Below, one piece after another: positions 8,567 to 39,986 of a stretch of 64,000 bases of DNA. The stretch's first letter is position 1. Each line of letters opens with the position of its first letter. The notes beneath the pieces are model-generated. The model did no database searches, was not told the DNA's origin, and saw nothing but the letters and a program-made list of their open reading frames with translations. Origin of the DNA: Entomortierella parvispora E1425 (Eukaryota; Fungi; Mortierellomycota); NCBI GenBank assembly GCA_020891255.1, contig BQFW01000015.1, positions 2,418,001 to 2,482,000 on the forward strand, written 5' to 3'. The position numbers and the translations under genes were made by a program.

Positions 8567-10847
8567 TTAATGCCCGCCACCACCGCGTGTGTAGCTGACA
8601 GCATCCAAGCAGATCGTGATAACTCCAATGACAATCTCAAAGAAAATGAGGATAATCACAATCCACTCCAGCTGCTCGCCGTGCGACGATGTCAAGTGCT
8701 CCTTGAGCATGTCCAAAAGATCGCTGATAACAGAAGTGCGCTGGTTCAGTAACTCGACACGTTGTCCAATTTCCAAGTAACCTAGTAAGTGGTCGCAATC
8801 CAGTTATATACTCGTTCTTCCAGGGGACAATATTATATCAAGACTTTTGTTGTGTTACCTCTAATAGCGGAATACAAGGGCTGGAAAGATGGCTCTGACC
8901 AGAAAATTTCAGGCGTGTCCAAAATGTTACTGACCAAGTTGACATTGATTCTCATGATAAATAGCTGTCCAATCTTTTTCGTGATTGCAGTTCTGTAGAG
9001 CAAAAGGCCGTAGAATAAAGGGTGAGTAATTCTTTTCCGGTATAGTCTTGTCCTTGTGCAGTGTCCATTGTTCAGTCCCCACACGTTACCTGGACATGGG
9101 AACCTTTCCTGTCTCGGCCATGGTCTGAGGAATGTTTTTCGTGGCGTTGATGGTATTTTCGATCAATCCTTCAAACAGAGTCATCTTCACAGACTGTGCA
9201 ATGGCGTGGGAGATCGTCAGCTTGACCATGTAGTTTCCGGCACTCTTCAATGTGATGACATCGTTATAAATCCTATTGTACAGGCAGAGTTAGTGTCCGA
9301 TTGACAGGTCCCAATGTGATCAAGAAAAAGTCATCCATACCTTGGCTGGTACTGAGAATTGTAATGGTATGAGAACTCTTCAGTTTCAACATCTTCGTCG
9401 TCTAATAAATGAAAACAGTGAGTTGGGTCAACGTCCAGTATTGGATAGGACTGTCATTGCATCTCTTATATTTCAAAAACTCACCAAGTTTCTCCTCTTC
9501 GAAGCGCGACAGTTCTTGCAACAGGCGTGCTTCTTCCTGTTCCGACATTCCCCAGATGACAACCACACCATAGTCAAAGTAGAGGACCTCAGGGATCGAC
9601 TCCTTGGATTGTTGCTGTTGTTGGTGCAAGAGACGCGATCCATTCGTGGCAGCCTCATCCAGTCCCAAAAGGTCAGCCGTTGATGGAGGTTTTGACGATA
9701 GAGTGTACGAGAAAGGAGTATAAATACTATCCAATTAACAAACTATGGTTAGCATTCCAGCACATCGTAGAATGAGGGTGTAGAAAAACAAGGGGACGCA
9801 CGAAAACATTCACGCGCGCGATAATTGGTTGGGCAAAGCCAACAGGGAACAAACTTACCATTCATCAAATCTCTTGGGCGCCGCGCCGTTTGTAGTCTTT
9901 CTGGACTGGAGGTAGTTGAACAGATCATCCATTCTATAGGACGAAGCTGTACAGTAGGCAATGACACGGGGCAGTTTCTGACGATCCAGTTTACTCATAC
10001 GATGAGCATCATTTCTCGCCCTATTGTCCAGTGATCATCGACATCGAACGAGAGGGTATGAGAGATCGTTAGGAGGGGCCTCTTTTGTGCTAGCTTTTGT
10101 CCAATGGATTAGGATTTCAACCAACAATGTACCAGTGCACATTGACCCAATCTCGCCCACCATGTGCCTTGAACACAAACACAGACTAGACCACCACTTT
10201 TTTTTCCTCAACGATCGACCTGCTTCATTAATGAAAATAACGACTTACATGCTAGACGACAATTGTCCGATCTGGTTATATGTCGTGTCATCAAATACGT
10301 ATTCGTCCTCCAAAACAGGGACATCCTTTTCTTCGGGGAACAACGTCAACTTTTGACTGGTCTTGGTCGTTCTCATGGGCTGCTTGACCTTGCCTCGGTT
10401 GATGGCCGCGTTGCTACTGGCAGCAGTGGCTGTCGAGCTGCCAACAGGCAAATTGTGAGCGGCCGACAAGGCCGCGGGTCTTCCGGACAAGGCACCACCA
10501 GAGCCAGCATTCACGCTCGAATTTGAGCCAGACCCTGTGGCGGCATTGACCTTGTTGGCGCCAGGGATCTGGGAATGAATGGGTGACTGCAGCTGATTTG
10601 TCTGCTGAGTGAATGCCTGTTTGGTCGGATTAATGATCTTAGGTGGCACGCCCGCGCTCCCACCAATGGCATTGGAAGAGTTGTTTTTACTGCTGTTATT
10701 GCTGTTGTTGCTGCTGTTGTTCGTGATGCTAGTCTGGCTGGCACTCTTGGGAAGAGGCGACTGGGGAGGCAGCGCCTCTGTGGGCGAGGCCAGGGAGGGG
10801 CCGGTTGTTTCTGGGAGGGTCTGGTAACCAGCGTTCTTGCGAGCCAT
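8567..10847 (-). CDS. RMD1: RMD1/Sif2-type DUF155 family protein (multi-exon)
   Basis: Motifs RTTKTSQKLTLFPE, YFDYGVVVIWGM, VNLVSNILDTPEIFWSEP and YLEIGQRVELLNQR...HGEQLEWIVIILI (C-terminal TM). Confidence 0.85.
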
Positions 10848-11525
10848 GGCGGAGGGAGGGTGGTGATTGGGGTAACAGGGAAGGGGGATGGGCACGAAGC
10901 GATGCGATTACAAACGAATGAAGAATGAAAGGAACAAAAACAGGAAGAATGGAATGCAGAAAAAGAAGAAAAAAAAAAAAAAAAAAAAAGAGAAAAAATG
11001 ATATCACTTTGCTCTCCGCTTGTGCCCACTGTGTGACCGTGGACTGGGGCCATGTCTGTGCTTCCTTCCTTTGTTTCCTTTGTCTTCCTTGCCCTGCTTA
11101 CTCTAGCGATGATCCTCTTCGCATAGTCGGGACTTCTTTTCGCACGCGTGTTGGTGTCCAGACCACACTCATGCATGCCGTGATCCACCGATCACACAGG
11201 GCCTCTGCTCCCAAAGTCGAATCTGCAAAGACTAGGAGGATGCCAGAGCAGATCGCCACCTGTTGGTGCATCCTCCTCCGTCTCGAGCGTGCCTGTTACA
11301 ACAACACAGGATCTGAAGGGGTTGTGCTATCGGATCTCCAAGCGAGGAAGACTACCGCAAGAAGCGTCGCTCTCTGTCCATTATTTTTTAATCTGCATGG
11401 CCCCACTCCACTCGATTTCCGGATTTATTAAGGGTGTGGCCTGTTGTGTTCTTGACGCCTTCACGCGTTCAAACGCTCGAGAGTCCATTCATTGTCTCTT
11501 TTCCGCCCCTGCATCCGTCCTGACA

Positions 11526-14500
11526 ATGTCACTGCGCCAATCTCGACTGTATGGAACATACTTCTTGCTACATAGAACCCGTGTACCATCTTTTTGCAGG
11601 AACAAAGGCTAACTCGCTCATTCCCCTCATTCCCCTTCATCGACAATGTAGATCATTTGGACCGCCCAAGCCAGCTTTGGTGGCGTCAACTGCCAATTCA
11701 GACAAGAATGAAGCCAAGGTCAACAAAGACGCTGGTTCAGAACCCACCAGCAAGCCTTCAGAGGAGAAATCAAAGACTCCATCCAATGACGTCGAAATGG
11801 AGGAGGAGGAAACCGTTCGGGGTAAAAAAAGGCGTTCCTGGTCTAGGTGCCCACAATTGCCCTTCGGATCACGGATATCTAACTTTTTGATTCACCTTGA
11901 ATAGGAGGCTCAAAAAGCAAGAAAAGGGAACGTCGTTTGGTCGATTCAGATGATGAGGATACAGCTCAGGAGCCCACAAATGCTGCAGAGGAGACCAAGG
12001 TGCATGCATCTACTCAGGAACACCGCGAGGAGGAATTGGCAACTACTACAAAAAAGTTGAAGCTCGACGCTGCTTCCCCCAAGAAACCAAAGACACAGGC
12101 TATCGAGAAGATTTCGCAAAATCCACTTACGACCCCAGAGGTCACTGATGATCTAATTGAGGCTGCAGAGAAGGAGGAGGCAGAACTTCAGGCGGCACAA
12201 GCGGATGATATCGAACAGGCTGCGGAAGCAGTAGAAATTAAGCAGGCTGCTGCGAAATGGCAAGTTTGGCTGTTCTTCCTTGCTCAGTTTCAATCCATGA
12301 CTTACAGATCTAACTAGCAATTACTTTGATGTTATAGGGCGGATATGTTTTCCAGGTCATCCGACAATCTGGAAGCTGCATCTTGGAAGAAAGGAGAGCC
12401 GTAAGTGAAAATTCGTTGCCAGAAATCCTTCAATCCTGCTCACGGGCTGTTAACATTGAATCGATATGTTGTTGACCGGATAGTGTTCCCTACGCGGCTT
12501 TATGTCAGACTTTTGAACTGATTGAGGCGACCCCGAAGCGACTTCAGATTCTGGACTACCTGGTCAAGTTTTTGATTCAGGTCATCAAGCTTAGCCCCGA
12601 GAGTTTGCTCACTGTCATCTACCTCTCCATTAACAAGGTATGCTCATGGTGTTGATGTGGAGCTTCTTTTGACACTCTCTGAACTTGACTGACTGGTCCT
12701 TCATTTTTCGACATTATAGCTCTGTCCAGAATACGAAGGACTTGAACTGGGCATTGGAGAGTCATTGCTTTTGAAAGCTATTGCTGAATCAACAGGAAGA
12801 GAAATGAAGAAGATCAAGGCTGACTATGCAGAGATCGGAGATCTTGGAATTGTTGCCATGGTGAGAATTGGGCTTTGCGTTTGCCTCACGTACCGACAGC
12901 CAAAAAACGAGGGACTGACATTCTGCCCATTTTTATGACCATGTGAACTTTAGAACAGCAGAAGTAATCAGCCTACTATGTTCAAGCCAAAGGCACTTAC
13001 TATTCCCCATGTATTCAAGACCCTCAAAGACATTGCCTCTTTGTCTGGAAACTCTGTAAGTGGATCTGGGATTGCTATGGAGATAGTTTCGTGAAAACCT
13101 GATAGAGATCTAGCAACATCGCACTGATATCCTCCGTTGTATATAGTCGCAAAAGCAAAAAGTGGACAAGATCAAAGTTTTGTTGGTGTCGTGTCGAAAC
13201 AAAGAAGCCAAGTTCTTGATGAGGTCTCTGGAAGGCAAGCTTCGTATTGGTCTTGCCGAAAGAACTGTGGTTGTCGCCCTTGCCCAGGCCATTGTCTTGT
13301 CCCGCCCAGGTATAGAGAAGCTTCAGTTCCACCCTTTTGTTTTAATTTGTCTCGGCTATTGTGATACAACACGATTTTAATGCTCTCTTGGATTTCTAGA
13401 TATCAAAAAGATCTCGAAGGATAAGCTGCAGCATGAATTGGAGCAAGCTGCAGATGTGGTCAAGTCTGTTTACAGGTATCGTGGATTTAAATATACGGGG
13501 CATCTATACCTTGCTACTTGACATGGGTCTGACTGTTTACTCTTTTGTCCCTCTTTAGTGAACTGCCATGCTACGACCTCATTGTACCGGCACTTCTCAA
13601 GGGTGACATCAAAGGGCTTCAAGAGGCGTGCAAGTTGACTCCAGGTAAGACAGTATACCCGTATTAGCCATGCATTTCTCTAGTATGAGTCAACTCTCGC
13701 TAACCGTCATCATGTTCTAGGTATTCCACTAAAGCCCATGTTGGCGCATCCTACCAAGGCGCTTACCGATATTTTGGATCGCTTCGAGAACATTGCATTC
13801 ACTTGCGAGTACAAGTATGACGGCGAGCGTGCCCAAATTCACAAGTTGGACGATGGCAGCATGAGGATTTACAGTAGAAACTCTGAGAACATGTCCGCCA
13901 AGTATCCTGATGTCATGGAGCGTCTAGTGAAGGTAAGGCGAGATGGTGGATAACGGCTGAGACACACAAGCTGACGTCAGAGTGGATCCAACCCTTACTT
14001 TTCTATTTTTATTTTTCTGTAGTTCGCCAAGGCGAATACCAGATCGTTTGTTTTGGATTGTGAGGCAGTGGCGTGGGACCGTGAACAAAAGTGTATTTTG
14101 CCCTTCCAAGTCTTGAGCACACGAAAGCGCAAGGATGTCAAGGAAGAGGATATCAAAGTTCAGGTTTGCATCTTTGCCTTTGATCTTCTCTACTTGAACG
14201 GCGAGTCTCTTCTTCGGGAACCCCTCTCCAAGCGCCGAGAGCTTTTATTGGACCACTTTAACGAAGTGGATGGCGAGTTTGCCTTTGCAAAGAGCATGAA
14301 CTCGACTCAAATTGAGGACATTCAGATCTTTTTGGACCAGAGTGTAACAGATAACTGCGAGGGGCTGATGGTCAAGACTCTGGATGGCACCGAGGCCAGT
14401 TATGAACCCTCCAAGAGATCCCGCAACTGGCTCAAGGTCAAGAAGGATTACCTCGCAGGCGTTGGTGATTCGATCGATCTGGTCGTGATTGGTGCTTACA

Positions 14501-35244: not shown

Positions 35245-35605
35245 TGCTGATGCCATGCGTGATATGCAGGCCATGTCGACCATGGGAATGGGCGCTGCTG
35301 CGGGTCCTCAGATGGGCCCTACTGGACAGCCCGCCGACATGCACAAGATCTTCTTGAGCGAGAAGGAGAACTTGGACTTGACAGAACACGAGTGGGGTTT
35401 GGAGAACGTTGAGATGCGTGTGTTAGTCAAGTATGGAAAGCTTCCTCGCTCCGTTTTGGTCGATTACAAGAAGGCAAAGTCTTTGGGAAGCGCCTCTAGC
35501 CAATCTGCATCATCCCCTTCATCGGCCTCAGCGCAGATTGCCGCTGCTGCCTCGTCTTCACCTGCCGTCACTGCCGGAAAGAAGAAGGGCAGGAGACAGG
35601 TTTAG
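33986..35605 (+). CDS. EMC3: ER membrane protein complex subunit 3
   Basis: MLLDP|[71 protein letters not shown]. The start is either ATG 33986 via intron 34015-34184 or ATG 34192. Confidence 0.93.
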
Positions 35606-36119
35606 GCGAGTCTTGGAATTGGTGTTGGGCGACAATGGAGGCGTTTAAAGAAATGCAGGAACGCGCGACAGCGAGATTGGATAGTCAGGAGAACAAGACA
35701 AACTCGCTATATAGAAAAATACGATATCCAACAATAACAAATGTATTCAAAAAAAACCCCCCATCGCCTCTTTGTCACCCACACGATGGGACCTGAGCTT
35801 TGATATGATATAGGCGAGTCCTTGCTCCTAGAACTCTGCCGGTCTTGTAACAACAACCGAGCTCTGAAAGAGACCCGGGGCGAGATGACAGACCACTTTT
35901 TTTTTCCTTTTTCTTCAAAATACCAGAAGAAGGACACGTGTGGAACAAGAAGAGCGATTTAAAGTCCCCCCTCGACTTCCTTGACACTGGCCAGAGAAAA
36001 AGCTTTGCATTACGGTTGTTGGATATCAGGATAAGTTTGCTTTATAGGTGTTTGATGTGATACTCCCAAGGCTACGGAGGGGAGGGGTACAGTCTTTTGT
36101 AAATTGAGATCTTGATATT

Positions 36120-37595
36120 CTAGGAGCCCCAGAAAGGATGGACACCAGGGACTTTGGGCCCAATCGGATGAACCAGAGGGCGGTGTGTGCTGTTTTGAAC
36201 AGCTGACAGTGAATTGTGGTACAAGAGCATTGTGCAGAAAGCAATGGATCGGCCTTGTGGTTCAGGATTGGATGTTTTTTTTTTTTTTTTTTTCATGGCA
36301 GTTTGGATATCATCATACACAACAACCCAAAAAATACGCCCAGTCTTGAACTTGATGTCTGTTTACTTGCAAATTGATCTGCTTTATGGATATCCGATGA
36401 AAATCTCGAAGACTACAGGGGCTGGGAGTATGGCGGTCCTCGTAAAACGGATATCTTGATTCTTGAAACAAATCCTTGGACCTCAAAAGGGAATCAGCAG
36501 GACTTGGGTCCAATTGGACGGTGAACCAGTTGGATGGCTACAGTGAATGTTGAAGAGAATGTAAGTAAAGGAACTCAAACCCACAAATCTGATCCCTTGA
36601 CTTCAATTGAAGCGCTTATCAGCAATGACTTACAAGCTACAAAAATATACGAGAAAACATGCCAAGATGCAGTGAGTGGACCAAAACCACTTTCTTTCAC
36701 ATTTGCAAAACACCTTCTGAAGAACACGCCATTGTCGGTACTTGGTGCTTTACCTATTAACTGAGTGACAGGCAAGCACGTTAATTTTAAATCTCACGAT
36801 TTGCCTCGGCTTTTTTTCCTTGAGCTCAAACACCGAAATGAAACTCACAGCCTGAAAGAGTGATGGAAGCACATCAAGAAAGAAGCAGGCACCTGTATTA
36901 GTGTCACGTTGACCATTGTCTGCCACGTCTTTTGTTTGTGAACATAATCAATCATCCTCGACTTACAGATCCTCGACCTACACACTGGAGGAGTGAAACC
37001 AAAAAAAAAAAAAAAAAAAAAAAAAGAGCGACCATGTCAGTTTCGTATCTGGAATCAATCTTGCTCCTGGTCACAGATGGCAACTTACGCGGCAATTCTG
37101 CAATACATAGGTATGATAAAAGAGTAATGAGTAACCTTGTTAGATGCAAATTCCGAGACTGATGCATCATTATCATTATCATTATCATTGAAAACGAGCT
37201 GCAAATTCGACTATGAACTGGTTGCACAACAATACGGAATACCAGACAAGAGACCTCATGTTATAGCTCTTTCACATTGAGATCAACCATGCAAATATTC
37301 AGCTTGTCTCTTATTCATCGAAGAGTGCTAGTTTTGGATTCAACTTACCCGCTGAACGGGCAGAACAGAATTTCCAACCGTACCTCTTTCTTCGAGGACA
37401 AAGGTCAACCATGAACTTACTCGCCGCTAATAGAGTAGATCGGGAATACCAAATGGAGAAGGGTTGTTGGGTGAAGGTAAGTTTCGGGCCTCTGGTTAGT
37501 GGGTAGATTCTTCATTCTACGATATTTGCTTACACTGGCGCAGCAATGACGACGCAGACCAAGGCAACAAGGACAAGCAGATATAGGATCTTCAT
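36120..37595 (-). CDS. Putative micro-exon gene encoding a small secreted peptide (not in the ORF track)
   Basis: Signal exon 37534-37595 (MKILYLLVLVALVCVVIAAP). Then YAG|exon|GTRAGT micro-exons at 37421-37426, 37349-37351, 37089-37097, 36982-36984 (donor GTAGGT; or 36967-36984), 36849-36851, 36754-36760 (donor GTAAAG) and 36634-36636. Candidate terminal exons start at 36537 and at 36189/36202. Confidence 0.65.
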
Positions 37596-37944
37596 TATAC
37601 GGTGTAGAGGCTGTGAGTGGGGTGAAGTGGTGAAAGTGGTGGAGGCTAGAAAAGAAAGAAAAGAAAACCAAAGAGAGCCTTGCAACAGAGGCGGGTGCAT
37701 CTTTTCGTAGAGGATCTGGGTAGAAAGCAGTCCAGTAAGAGCATCATGGGAGAGAGGCATCCCAGTGCCGACACACGAAGGCGTTTGCTGTGAGGGTAAA
37801 AAGGGCCGCGGTGGTGATGGAGAAGCATGGAAGGGTCCCTGCAACAATGACCCGCTGGCTGGAGATTGACAATGAACCATTTTTTTTTGAGATTGTGGGT
37901 TTTTATTGTAATTGTTGATATTGTTGTCTGGTTCCAAGATTTAT

Positions 37945-39986
37945 TTACAGTCCACGGGAAGCGTTGAAGTTCTTGGTGATAGCCTCCATGAACTCGCTGG
38001 TGGTTGCGTAGTGCTTACGCTCCAAGTTGGCACCATGGATGGCCAATGCGAGATCCTTGGTCATGATACCGGAGACATCAACCGTGTCCACGCAGGCCTT
38101 CTCCAAGTCGAGCGAGAACTTGAGCAAGGCCTCATTCTGATCCAAACGTGCACGATGGGCCAATCCGCGAGTCCAGGCAAAGATCGAGGCGATAGGGTTG
38201 GTGGAAGTCTCGCGACCTTTCTGGTGCTCACGGAAATGGCGAGTCACGGTACCATGAGCCGCCTCAGACTCCAAAGTCTTGCCATCGGGGGTCACAAGGA
38301 CCGAGGTCATCAAGCCCAAAGATCCGAAGCCCTGGGCCAAAATATCAGACTGGACATCACCATCGTAGTTCTTGCAGGCCCAGACAAATCCTCCCGAGGA
38401 CTTGAGTCCCTGCGCCACCATGTCGTCAATCAAGCGGTGCTCGTACCAGATCTTCTTGTCCTCAAACTCCTTTTTGTAATCCCTGTGGAATATGGACTCT
38501 TAATTAGTTCCTAATACCTCGAGTTGCACAACGAATGTAACATGGGGATAATCGAAAGAGTCACTGCATCAAAACGAGTCTTACTTCTGGTAAATATCCT
38601 CGAAGATATCCTTGAAACGACCATCATACTTCTTCAAGATTGTGTTCTTTGTGCTGAGGTACAATGGCATGTTTTTCGTAAGGGCCATCTTGAAGCAGCT
38701 GTGGGCAAACCCTGTGATGGACTGAGAGTCAGTAGAAATGATAAGTCATGGTCAGCAAAAGATCCTATTCTGTGCAGTTTTTTATCACCGAAATAAAAAA
38801 GGACGGGATCCGCGTCTGCACTTACAGCATCAGTGTTGTACATGGCCATGCCGACACCAGCGCCTTCATAGTCGTAAACAACCCACTTCTTGGTCTCGCC
38901 TCCGTTCTTGGGTGTAAAGGACATCTCGAAACGACCAGGTCCCTCCGCAATAAAGTCAGTAGCCTTGTACTATGATTGTCAACCAAATGAAGACATCGGG
39001 GGAGCGTTGGTTTAGTAAAATAAAAATCTTTCAAGGCACTTGCAAAAAAAAAAAAAAAAAAAAAAACCGTTCCTCTTTTTACCTGATCTCCGAAAGCGTG
39101 ACGACCAATGATGATGGGCTTGGTCCAACCAGGCACAATCTTTGGTACGCTCTTAAGCAGGATGGGCTCCCTGAAGACCGTTCCGTTGAGAATGTTGCGA
39201 ATGGTGCCGTTGGGAGACTTGTACATCTCCGACAGGTTGTATTCCTTGACACGCTGCTCATCTGGGGTAATGGTTGCACACTTAATTCCCACGTTGTACT
39301 TCAGGATGGCCTGCGCAGCATCGATAGTCACTTGGTCCTTGGTCTACAAAGATCAGGAAAGCGTCAGATTATACGTTATCAGTTCCATACGTTGCGGAAG
39401 GGACCTTCTCTCCTCTCCCCTCTCTCCTCGTTCTGATGGTGGTCCAAGTTTGGTTGCCCTGATCGATGAGTAGAGACAGTTGGCTGTTGAAAGTACCTGC
39501 TCACGATGATCCATGCCAAGGTCATAGTACTTAATATCGAGGTTGACGTGAGGCAAAATAAGCTAAAGGAAGAACAAAAGGTGCAAAAGAGTTAGATCGG
39601 GTTCTTGTCAAAAGCTTGATCGATATCAAAAAGATCGAAAAATGCGGGGTACGAAGAGCAGGCGCGTGTTCTGTCGTCATGGTTACCTTCTCCTTGATGG
39701 ACTGCCAAATGATGCGAGTCATTTCATCGCCATCGAGATCGACGACGGGGTTAGCAACCTGGATGCGAGAGTCCTTTGTGTCTAAAAGATGGACGGCATG
39801 AACAAGGGGAATGGAGCAAGATTTAGCCATTGCACCAGACTGATTGAGCTGGTTCCTGGGAATCAGGTGGATGCATTCAGGGGATCACTTGCAGGCGCGG
39901 GTGGCGTGGGCGTTGGCGGAGGCGAGGGTGGCAGTCCTGGCGAGGCCAGGGAAGGCGCGGCGGGCAGAGGAGGCGAGCAAGGACAT
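37945..39986 (-). CDS. IDP1: NADP-dependent isocitrate dehydrogenase with mitochondrial presequence (multi-exon)
   Basis: Arg-rich presequence [98 protein letters not shown]. Confidence 0.97.

Follow-up and report, generated by a model that had tools for sequence, protein, structure and literature searches.

Between the convergent genes for EMC3 (plus strand, ending at 35605) and NADP-IDH (minus strand, ending at 37945) of Entomortierella parvispora E1425, closely spaced splice signals enclose stretches of only 3 to 9 nt. The question which this locus raises is whether a gene is written there in such small pieces and, if so, what it encodes. A preliminary description, made from the letters of the DNA, had proposed an exon for a signal peptide followed by a chain of symmetric micro-exons, and the use of these micro-exons in the combinatorial manner of the schistosome micro-exon genes (MEGs). 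Here, this proposal was examined computationally. All positions refer to the whole 64-kb stretch of DNA that was analysed, called the window below.

Materials and methods

The close relative used for comparison is represented by metagenome contigs only, with L005 as the main locus and L006 and L007 identical to it. Among the other loci, L001 is without synteny, and L003 and L004 end before the IDH-EMC3 interval. The gene family was defined from the relative's loci L005 and L008-L017, and metagenome contigs were scanned for two consecutive unit junctions. Codon-position base composition was derived from housekeeping ORFs of the same organism. In phase 2, as the term is used here, the first base of an exon is the third base of a codon.

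For transcription, assembled contigs of run X2 were used, a cDNA run that shares its sample with the DNA run X1, though listed as 'DNA?'. Illumina adapters stand at the ends of the X2 contigs, and in the one for IDH 38482 is joined to 38585 over a GT..AG intron; for these reasons X2 was read as cDNA. This fits the genome paper on E. parvispora E1425, which describes one RNA library, prepared from cured mycelium (PMC8759367). The best protein matches that carry a name come from Mortierellaceae, in agreement with this source.

Results

Every element of the predicted chain, splice signals included, was found in the window sequence exactly where it had been placed, on the minus strand (Table 1). 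The gene is about 1.1 kb long, and most of its coding sequence consists of symmetric micro-exons between the signal exon and the last exon. Exon 1, with its ATG at 37595 and the boundary GT/GTAAGC, encodes one lysine, 16 hydrophobic residues and AAP, which makes a typical signal sequence. It is followed by six micro-exons of 6, 3, 9, 3, 3 and 3 nt, each lying between a YAG acceptor, preceded by a pyrimidine-rich stretch, and a donor of the GTRAGT type; the spacers along the chain measure 107, 69, 251, 104, 130, 212 and 96 nt. The lengths of the micro-exons are all multiples of 3, and the reading frame is open as far as either of two possible stops. GT..AG ends are retained in all eight introns, with perfect GTRAGT in six of the eight donors. 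At the TGT exon, a local duplication of 15 nt has given rise to a second donor, GTAAGT at 36966, and the 18-nt form of the exon which ends there contains an in-frame TAG. Skipping of the 7-nt exon turns 36848-36637 into a single intron of 212 nt.

Table 1. Parts of the gene and of its immediate surroundings, in window positions; slashes mark exon boundaries
Element	Position	Strand	Remarks
5' leader	37596..37643	-	37643-37563 aligns to L005 12996-12910, 74%; 40 nt before ATG alike in all family members
Exon 1, MKILYLLVLVALVCVVIAAP + GT, signal-peptide-like	37534..37595	-	62 nt, 20 codons plus GT, phase 2, donor GTAAGC
Intron 1, 107 nt, GTAAGC..TAG	37427..37533	-	
Micro-exon TAG/CGGCGA/GTAAGT, 6 nt	37421..37426	-	
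Intron 2, 69 nt	37352..37420	-	3' end, CGG exon and donor match five to six L005 array junctions, 70-79%
Micro-exon CAG/CGG/GTAAGT, 3 nt	37349..37351	-	
Intron 3, 251 nt, two fused intron units and ATGATA microsatellite (about 37165-37190)	37098..37348	-	nhmmer, BLAST
Decayed junction CAG/TTC/ATAGTC inside intron 3	37220-37209	-	BLAST aligns 37253-37182 across live L005 junction
Micro-exon CAG/AATTGCCGC/GTAAGT, 9 nt	37089..37097	-	
Intron 4, 104 nt, CTGAC branch-like site, T25 tract 37025-37001	36985..37088	-	
Micro-exon CAG/TGT/GTAGGT, 3 nt	36982..36984	-	
Intron 5, 130 nt from GTAGGT or 115 nt from GTAAGT at 36966	36852..36981	-	
Micro-exon CAG/GCT/GTGAGT, 3 nt	36849..36851	-	aligns to CGT exon junction of L005
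Intron 6a, 88 nt	36761..36848	-	
7-nt exon TTAATAG, weak donor GTAAAG	36754..36760	-	TTAA and flanking introns align with four family members
Intron 6b, 117 nt	36637..36753	-	last 87 nt retained in the sole cDNA fragment (colinear 36634-36723)
Micro-exon TAG/CTT/GTAAGT, 3 nt	36634..36636	-	donor used in RNA; identical CTT exon in L012
Intron 7, 96 nt, spliced out in cDNA	36538..36633	-	acceptor TAG before 36537
Terminal exon, 3' end putative	36300..36537	-	47-aa frame stops at 36485-36483
Conserved block CAAGGATTTGTTTCAAGAAT (KDLFQE) in terminal exon	36478-36459	-	one base off chain frame
Diverged second copy of last-intron end and terminal exon	36038..36244	-	local alignment, 36573-36380 vs 36244-36038

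The second copy of the terminal exon follows the first at a distance of about 330 nt downstream. In the frame that matches the chain it has no stop for about 66 codons, a stretch which includes its counterpart of the conserved block. An alternative last exon and a leftover from a tandem paralogue are both conceivable; the single RNA fragment described below used the proximal acceptor and not that of the second copy. An A19 homopolymer (36275-36293, minus-strand reading) follows the terminal exon.

The argument that a chain of exons of 3n length with near-perfect donors would hardly arise by chance was upheld by motif counts. Of the 33 GTRAGT hexamers on the minus strand of the 64-kb window, six are crowded into the 0.8 kb of this chain, and YAG-NNN-GTRAGT was counted six times in the whole window where shuffles predict 1.4, three of the six being at the locus. 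Of the three matches outside it, the two that were inspected (10243 and 23298) are both ordinary ends of long exons. No second micro-exon cluster was found elsewhere in the 64-kb window. A loose group of short YAG-N(3-8)-GTRAG motifs at 12300-12630 on the minus strand probably represents ordinary exon ends as well.

The interval between IDH and EMC3 was then compared with that of the close relative, in which the IDH protein is 98% identical to that of the window. In L005, the two genes are 3 kb apart (10501-13524) and a homologous gene lies between them (10868-12942, minus strand); it is inverted relative to that of the window strain, with the orientation of the flanking IDH and EMC3 unchanged. 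The 5' leader and exon 1 of the two genes align at 74%, and the end of the last intron with the terminal exon at 68% (83% in the core), while the intron bodies of the window are alignable to those of L005 at only about 60-65%. The L005 gene consists of a first exon, about 12 exons of exactly 3 nt set between tandem introns of 112-118 nt (about 113), and, at the end of the array, an 8-nt exon TTAAACAA, one further 3-nt exon and the terminal exon. Conservation of the splice signals in syntenic relatives had been put forward as a check on the gene, and in this close relative they are indeed conserved between IDH and EMC3. The same convergent pair is present, and the gene absent, in L002, which represents a relative at a greater distance (coding identity about 78%); since only about 220 nt (9661-9881) separate IDH from EMC3 there, the gene is young or dispensable.

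Two features of the L005 gene may be mentioned separately. Its first exon of 63 nt is in phase 0 and ends in FCSCS rather than in ..AAP. When its 8-nt exon is included, a frame of 137 codons is open in the terminal exon, with no homologue and no confident fold; either the copy is frameshifted and this long frame has stayed open by luck, or the protein exists in a longer form.

The contig scan revealed at least nine further loci of the same design, from the same organism as L005, in the metagenome of L006; a second metagenome contributed one array that looks unrelated. The latter (L018, 400-700, metagenome Ga0187728) is a tandem array of 130-nt units starting GTAAGTTGAATG, with at least one CAG/AAT/GT junction, and may be a more distant array of the same kind. 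In five of the nine further loci (L010, L011, L014, L015 and L017) there is an intact first exon, MKIQ(Y/C)LLV..AAP, similar to that of the window, and L013 has a variant without the usual donor. These first exons are 62 nt long in L010, L011, L014 and L017, 65 nt in L015 and 59 nt in L013, all of them in phase 2, to which the 63-nt exon of L005 is the exception. Exon 1 of the window shares the features by which the family was recognised, namely an alignable signal sequence MKIxYLLV...AAP of 62 nt plus or minus 3 in phase 2, and so does its chain: where the family has 3-nt exons, each between CAG and GTAAGT, the window has four of that length and two longer ones, of 6 and 9 nt. In the DNA run X1, several other contigs match exon 1 of the window at 83-89% and have the same ..CCAGT/GTA boundary.

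When 49 intron units were compared, conservation was highest in the columns of the donor, of the CAG acceptor and of a CTRAC branch site situated about 45 nt ahead of that acceptor, and lowest in the three exon bases. This pattern fits introns that would be kept spliceable around a freely changing codon. A profile of the relative's units gave one clear nhmmer match in the window (37212-37107, E=6e-5), and junction-centred BLAST gave matches for introns 2, 3 and 5/6a; the remaining introns, in a gene whose intron lengths range from 69 to 251 nt, are too diverged. Judged by these alignments, the introns of the window may be diverged members of a family of units of about 110 nt. The window copy is short (six micro-exons, two of them of 6 and 9 nt); with introns diverged to 69-251 nt, it is unlike a satellite. 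Taken with the family, these observations show a genuine gene design which is held under constraint for splicing.

A conserved intron fold or an intron-encoded RNA was also considered, and dropped, since RNAalifold produced no consensus structure for the 49 units. The Rfam scan gave no match above noise; its only hit, snoU85 at 36047-36112 on the plus strand of the window, lies outside the gene and reached 20 bits where the gathering score is 41, and being below the threshold it was taken as noise.

The reading frame was approached from two sides. The 65 micro-exons of the relative favour phase 2 over the other phases by 17-33 natural-log units of codon-position composition, and the nine triplets of the window do so by 4-6 units. 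Composition and the phase set by the first exon are independent lines which agree, and on this ground the chain was taken to be translated in phase 2, as had been proposed from the outset; the lengths of the first exons across the family and the codon-position composition both favour that reading. Translation of the micro-exons in phase 0, which would yield a product rich in Arg and Pro, was rejected on the same two grounds.

Less straightforward is the C-terminus. After the array, the whole family has an 8-nt exon, (T/C)TAAACAA, whose bases 2-4 form an in-frame TAA in phase 2; with its donor it is written TTAAACAA/GTAAGA. The 7-nt TTAATAG of the window is its homologue with one base lost, and is read in phase 2 as T followed by the stop TAA. 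Because of this in-frame TAA the protein would end in one of two ways: inclusion of the exon gives 29 aa (..APVGDGIAAVL), and its skipping gives 47 aa, with the stop at 36485-36483. The peptide originally proposed thus holds in its 47-aa form if the 7-nt exon is skipped, but is replaced by a 29-aa form ending ..AAVL if the TAA-bearing exon is included. In L010 the 8-nt exon has lost its donor, and therefore the skipped form must exist there.

One possibility is that the terminal exon is nothing but 3' UTR, yet long open frames weaken this reading, and so do the frame shifts of L009 and L013, which compensate each other. The KDLFQE block is in the frame of the chain in four of the seven members examined, in two of the four by way of compensating frame shifts, and it seems from this that some members of the family, at least, translate the tail. 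The chain frame of the window stops just before the block, which is present but displaced by one base from that frame. A homologous contig of X3 has a net length difference of one base within 36491-36495, and from the indels listed we infer that this homologue would stay in register with the block.

Searches with the products returned little. The spliced 47-aa peptide had no match among 5.8 billion proteins. For the terminal ORFs of the relative and of the window, no Pfam family scored above noise, the ESM Atlas gave no confident fold or relative (pLDDT 0.45), and comparison with 1.84 billion representatives yielded only chance matches, to leucine-rich repeats of plants and to a protein from a phage.

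Evidence from RNA comes from one X2 contig with an insert of 139 nt, which joins 36634 to 36537, the exact removal of the predicted intron 36633-36538. The joint is unambiguous, and CT..AC on the plus strand corresponds to GT..AG on the minus. Transcription of the locus thus takes place from the strand that had been predicted, and the donor of the CTT exon is used. This support amounts to a single low-depth fragment: the cDNA word depth in X2 is 3.4 at the locus compared with 64 for IDH. The fragment is colinear with the genome from 36634 up to 36723, so that the intron before CTT was still present in it. Such a half-spliced molecule fits sequential removal of the introns, and also ordinary intron retention. 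Among the X2 contigs, with their one fragment at the locus, no micro-exon spliced on both sides was seen, and neither exon 1 nor any paralogous first exon is covered by a cDNA contig of this one RNA data set. The RNA test named in the preliminary description therefore turned out favourably for the last intron, spliced as predicted, but not for exon 1, which was unseen, nor for the intron retained in the fragment. That so little is expressed in axenic mycelium suggests that the gene is used under particular conditions.

The DNA run also contains a paralogous IDH (51 differences in 304 nt, window 38160-38463), with a cDNA depth about eight times that of the window IDH.

Discussion

The results presented in this report indicate that the locus is probably a real, spliceable member of its family, with a predicted secreted prepeptide of 29 or 47 aa as the product. 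The gene of a signal exon and symmetric micro-exons, as first proposed, has gained one cDNA junction, a syntenic homologue of the same design and a multi-copy family in its favour. We regard the locus as a weakly transcribed, diverged member of a family of small secreted proteins in the Mortierellaceae.

The most serious alternative is that of a decaying copy, which inherited the architecture but lost its useful product, so that the RNA would represent background transcription of a pseudogene. We consider this possible, though the less probable account. The dead junction at 37220-37209, the 7-nt exon that is one base short and has the weak donor GTAAAG, and the insertions of T25 and a microsatellite into introns are all changes expected on this account, as are the very low expression, with one intron retained, and the chain frame being off-register with the KDLFQE block, which is in frame in four of seven members. 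However, a gene without function would hardly have preserved GT..AG in eight of eight introns and perfect donors in six of eight, while its intron bodies are alignable at only about 60-65%; nor does it agree with this that all micro-exons are multiples of 3 in an ORF open up to either stop, and that the last intron is spliced precisely. Truncated tails occur in L008 and L010 of the relative too, and for this reason the tail may not be needed. Judged from these features, the window copy looks partly decayed.

A separate problem is whether the micro-exons serve to generate diversity. By analogy with schistosome MEGs, combinatorial skipping of symmetric exons would produce a library of secreted variants, and lengths of 3n mean that any skipping keeps the frame. 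The exon bases are, moreover, the most variable part of the family, and the genes for Tuber NLR proteins with codon-sized exons are reported, in two papers that cite Iotti 2012, to be extensively alternatively spliced (PMC4986451, PMC13449251). Even so, we find such a role unlikely. RNA from the locus shows no micro-exon either included or skipped, the strong and uniform donors and acceptors look constitutive, and symmetric lengths are explained equally well by constraint on the reading frame and by duplication of a unit of 3 nt plus an intron.

It is far less likely still that the exons are irrelevant and the array acts without a protein, as a set of self-propagating introns or a host gene for small RNAs. 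Introns far better conserved than exons, and products without homologues, could be understood in this way, but the conserved hydrophobic signal sequence of the first exon, with its many synonymous differences and a length which keeps one phase, speaks against it; the same applies to the composition of the exons, which matches codon positions in the phase of the first exon, and to their lengths, always multiples of 3, and neither an Rfam match above noise nor a conserved intron fold was obtained. Finally, chance clustering of splice-like motifs in an intergenic spacer, which has in its favour nothing beyond the missing annotation and the weak RNA signal, is refuted by the motif statistics, the predicted junction spliced in cDNA and the homology to a multi-copy family of another organism, and its probability is negligible.

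If the locus is a genuine family member, a mechanism may be outlined. In this family the sequence after the signal peptide is written in exons of one codon, here of 3-9 nt. Every exon is trailed by an intron of about 110 nt that is complete in itself, having a donor, a branch site some 45 nt from the acceptor, a pyrimidine tract and the final CAG. The introns would be recognised singly, by intron definition, and presumably removed one after another, because an exon of 3 nt is too short for both of its splice sites to be occupied simultaneously. Arrays would evolve by duplication or loss of intron-plus-codon units. Decay of a junction would delete a codon, as the relic at 37220-37209 may illustrate, and loss of an intron may have fused codons into the exons of 6 and 9 nt. 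Translation would proceed in phase 2 from the 62-nt first exon, and the TAA exon of 7 or 8 nt, present throughout the family, would end the protein when included and let the frame enter the last exon when skipped. The full scheme for the Mortierellaceae, in which hypervariable secreted peptides are built codon by codon through unit duplication, ordered splicing, skipping libraries and a switch at the TAA exon between short and tailed forms, is put forward tentatively, and we would not expect all of its parts to hold together.

Several known systems resemble the one described here. Schistosome MEGs likewise have a first exon for a signal peptide, short symmetric exons and a conventional last exon; their products are small and secreted, and their families have many copies and evolve fast. 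Their exons measure roughly 6-36 nt, while here they are mostly of 3 nt and the introns are tandem copies of a unit of about 110 nt. The hosts differ as well, a flatworm and a fungus, and there is no sequence relationship, the spliced peptide having no protein match. Exon skipping is the hallmark of MEGs, while in the fungal gene it would be a possibility offered by the design; the likeness between the two systems is one of design and not of descent.

A closer precedent among fungi is provided by Tuber melanosporum, whose NLR genes contain arrays of codon-sized exons, according to later papers (PMC3689799, PMC4986451, PMC13449251) that cite Iotti 2012. The NLR genes of the nank type form a fungal family with arrays of one-codon (3-nt) exons, just as the family described here does, but they encode intracellular receptors of an ascomycete rather than a tiny predicted secreted protein of Mortierellomycotina, and alternative splicing is reported for them. 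Our gene starts with a signal sequence, and Pfam detected neither NACHT nor ANK in the terminal ORFs of the relative or of the window. As to novelty, we found no paper linking micro-exons with Mortierella or Mortierellaceae, but codon-sized exons as such had already been published, in the NLR genes of T. melanosporum.

Two further parallels concern the introns. Like introner-like elements, in which near-identical introns multiply and duplicated segments with splice signals create introns, the units described here are repeated; introners, however, spread to unrelated genes, whereas these copies stand head to tail in one gene, each with its codon. Recursive splicing at ratchet points shares with our arrays an acceptor and a donor placed nearly back to back, which forces neighbouring introns to be removed stepwise. 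Ratchet points leave nothing in the mRNA, while here 3-9 nt would stay and be translated.

If the family is spliced as its DNA predicts, the spliceosome of these fungi routinely copes with 3-nt exons in long succession. Exons can physically be hardly smaller than this, and an early-diverging fungus would offer a tractable system for finding out how such exons are recognised. The arrays would also represent a simple route of peptide evolution, in which one intron-plus-codon unit is gained or dropped each time. Common soil fungi of this kind live with endobacteria and plants. Standard gene finders miss genes of this design, and the 47-aa peptide is without a match among known proteins; part of the secretome of these fungi may therefore be unannotated.
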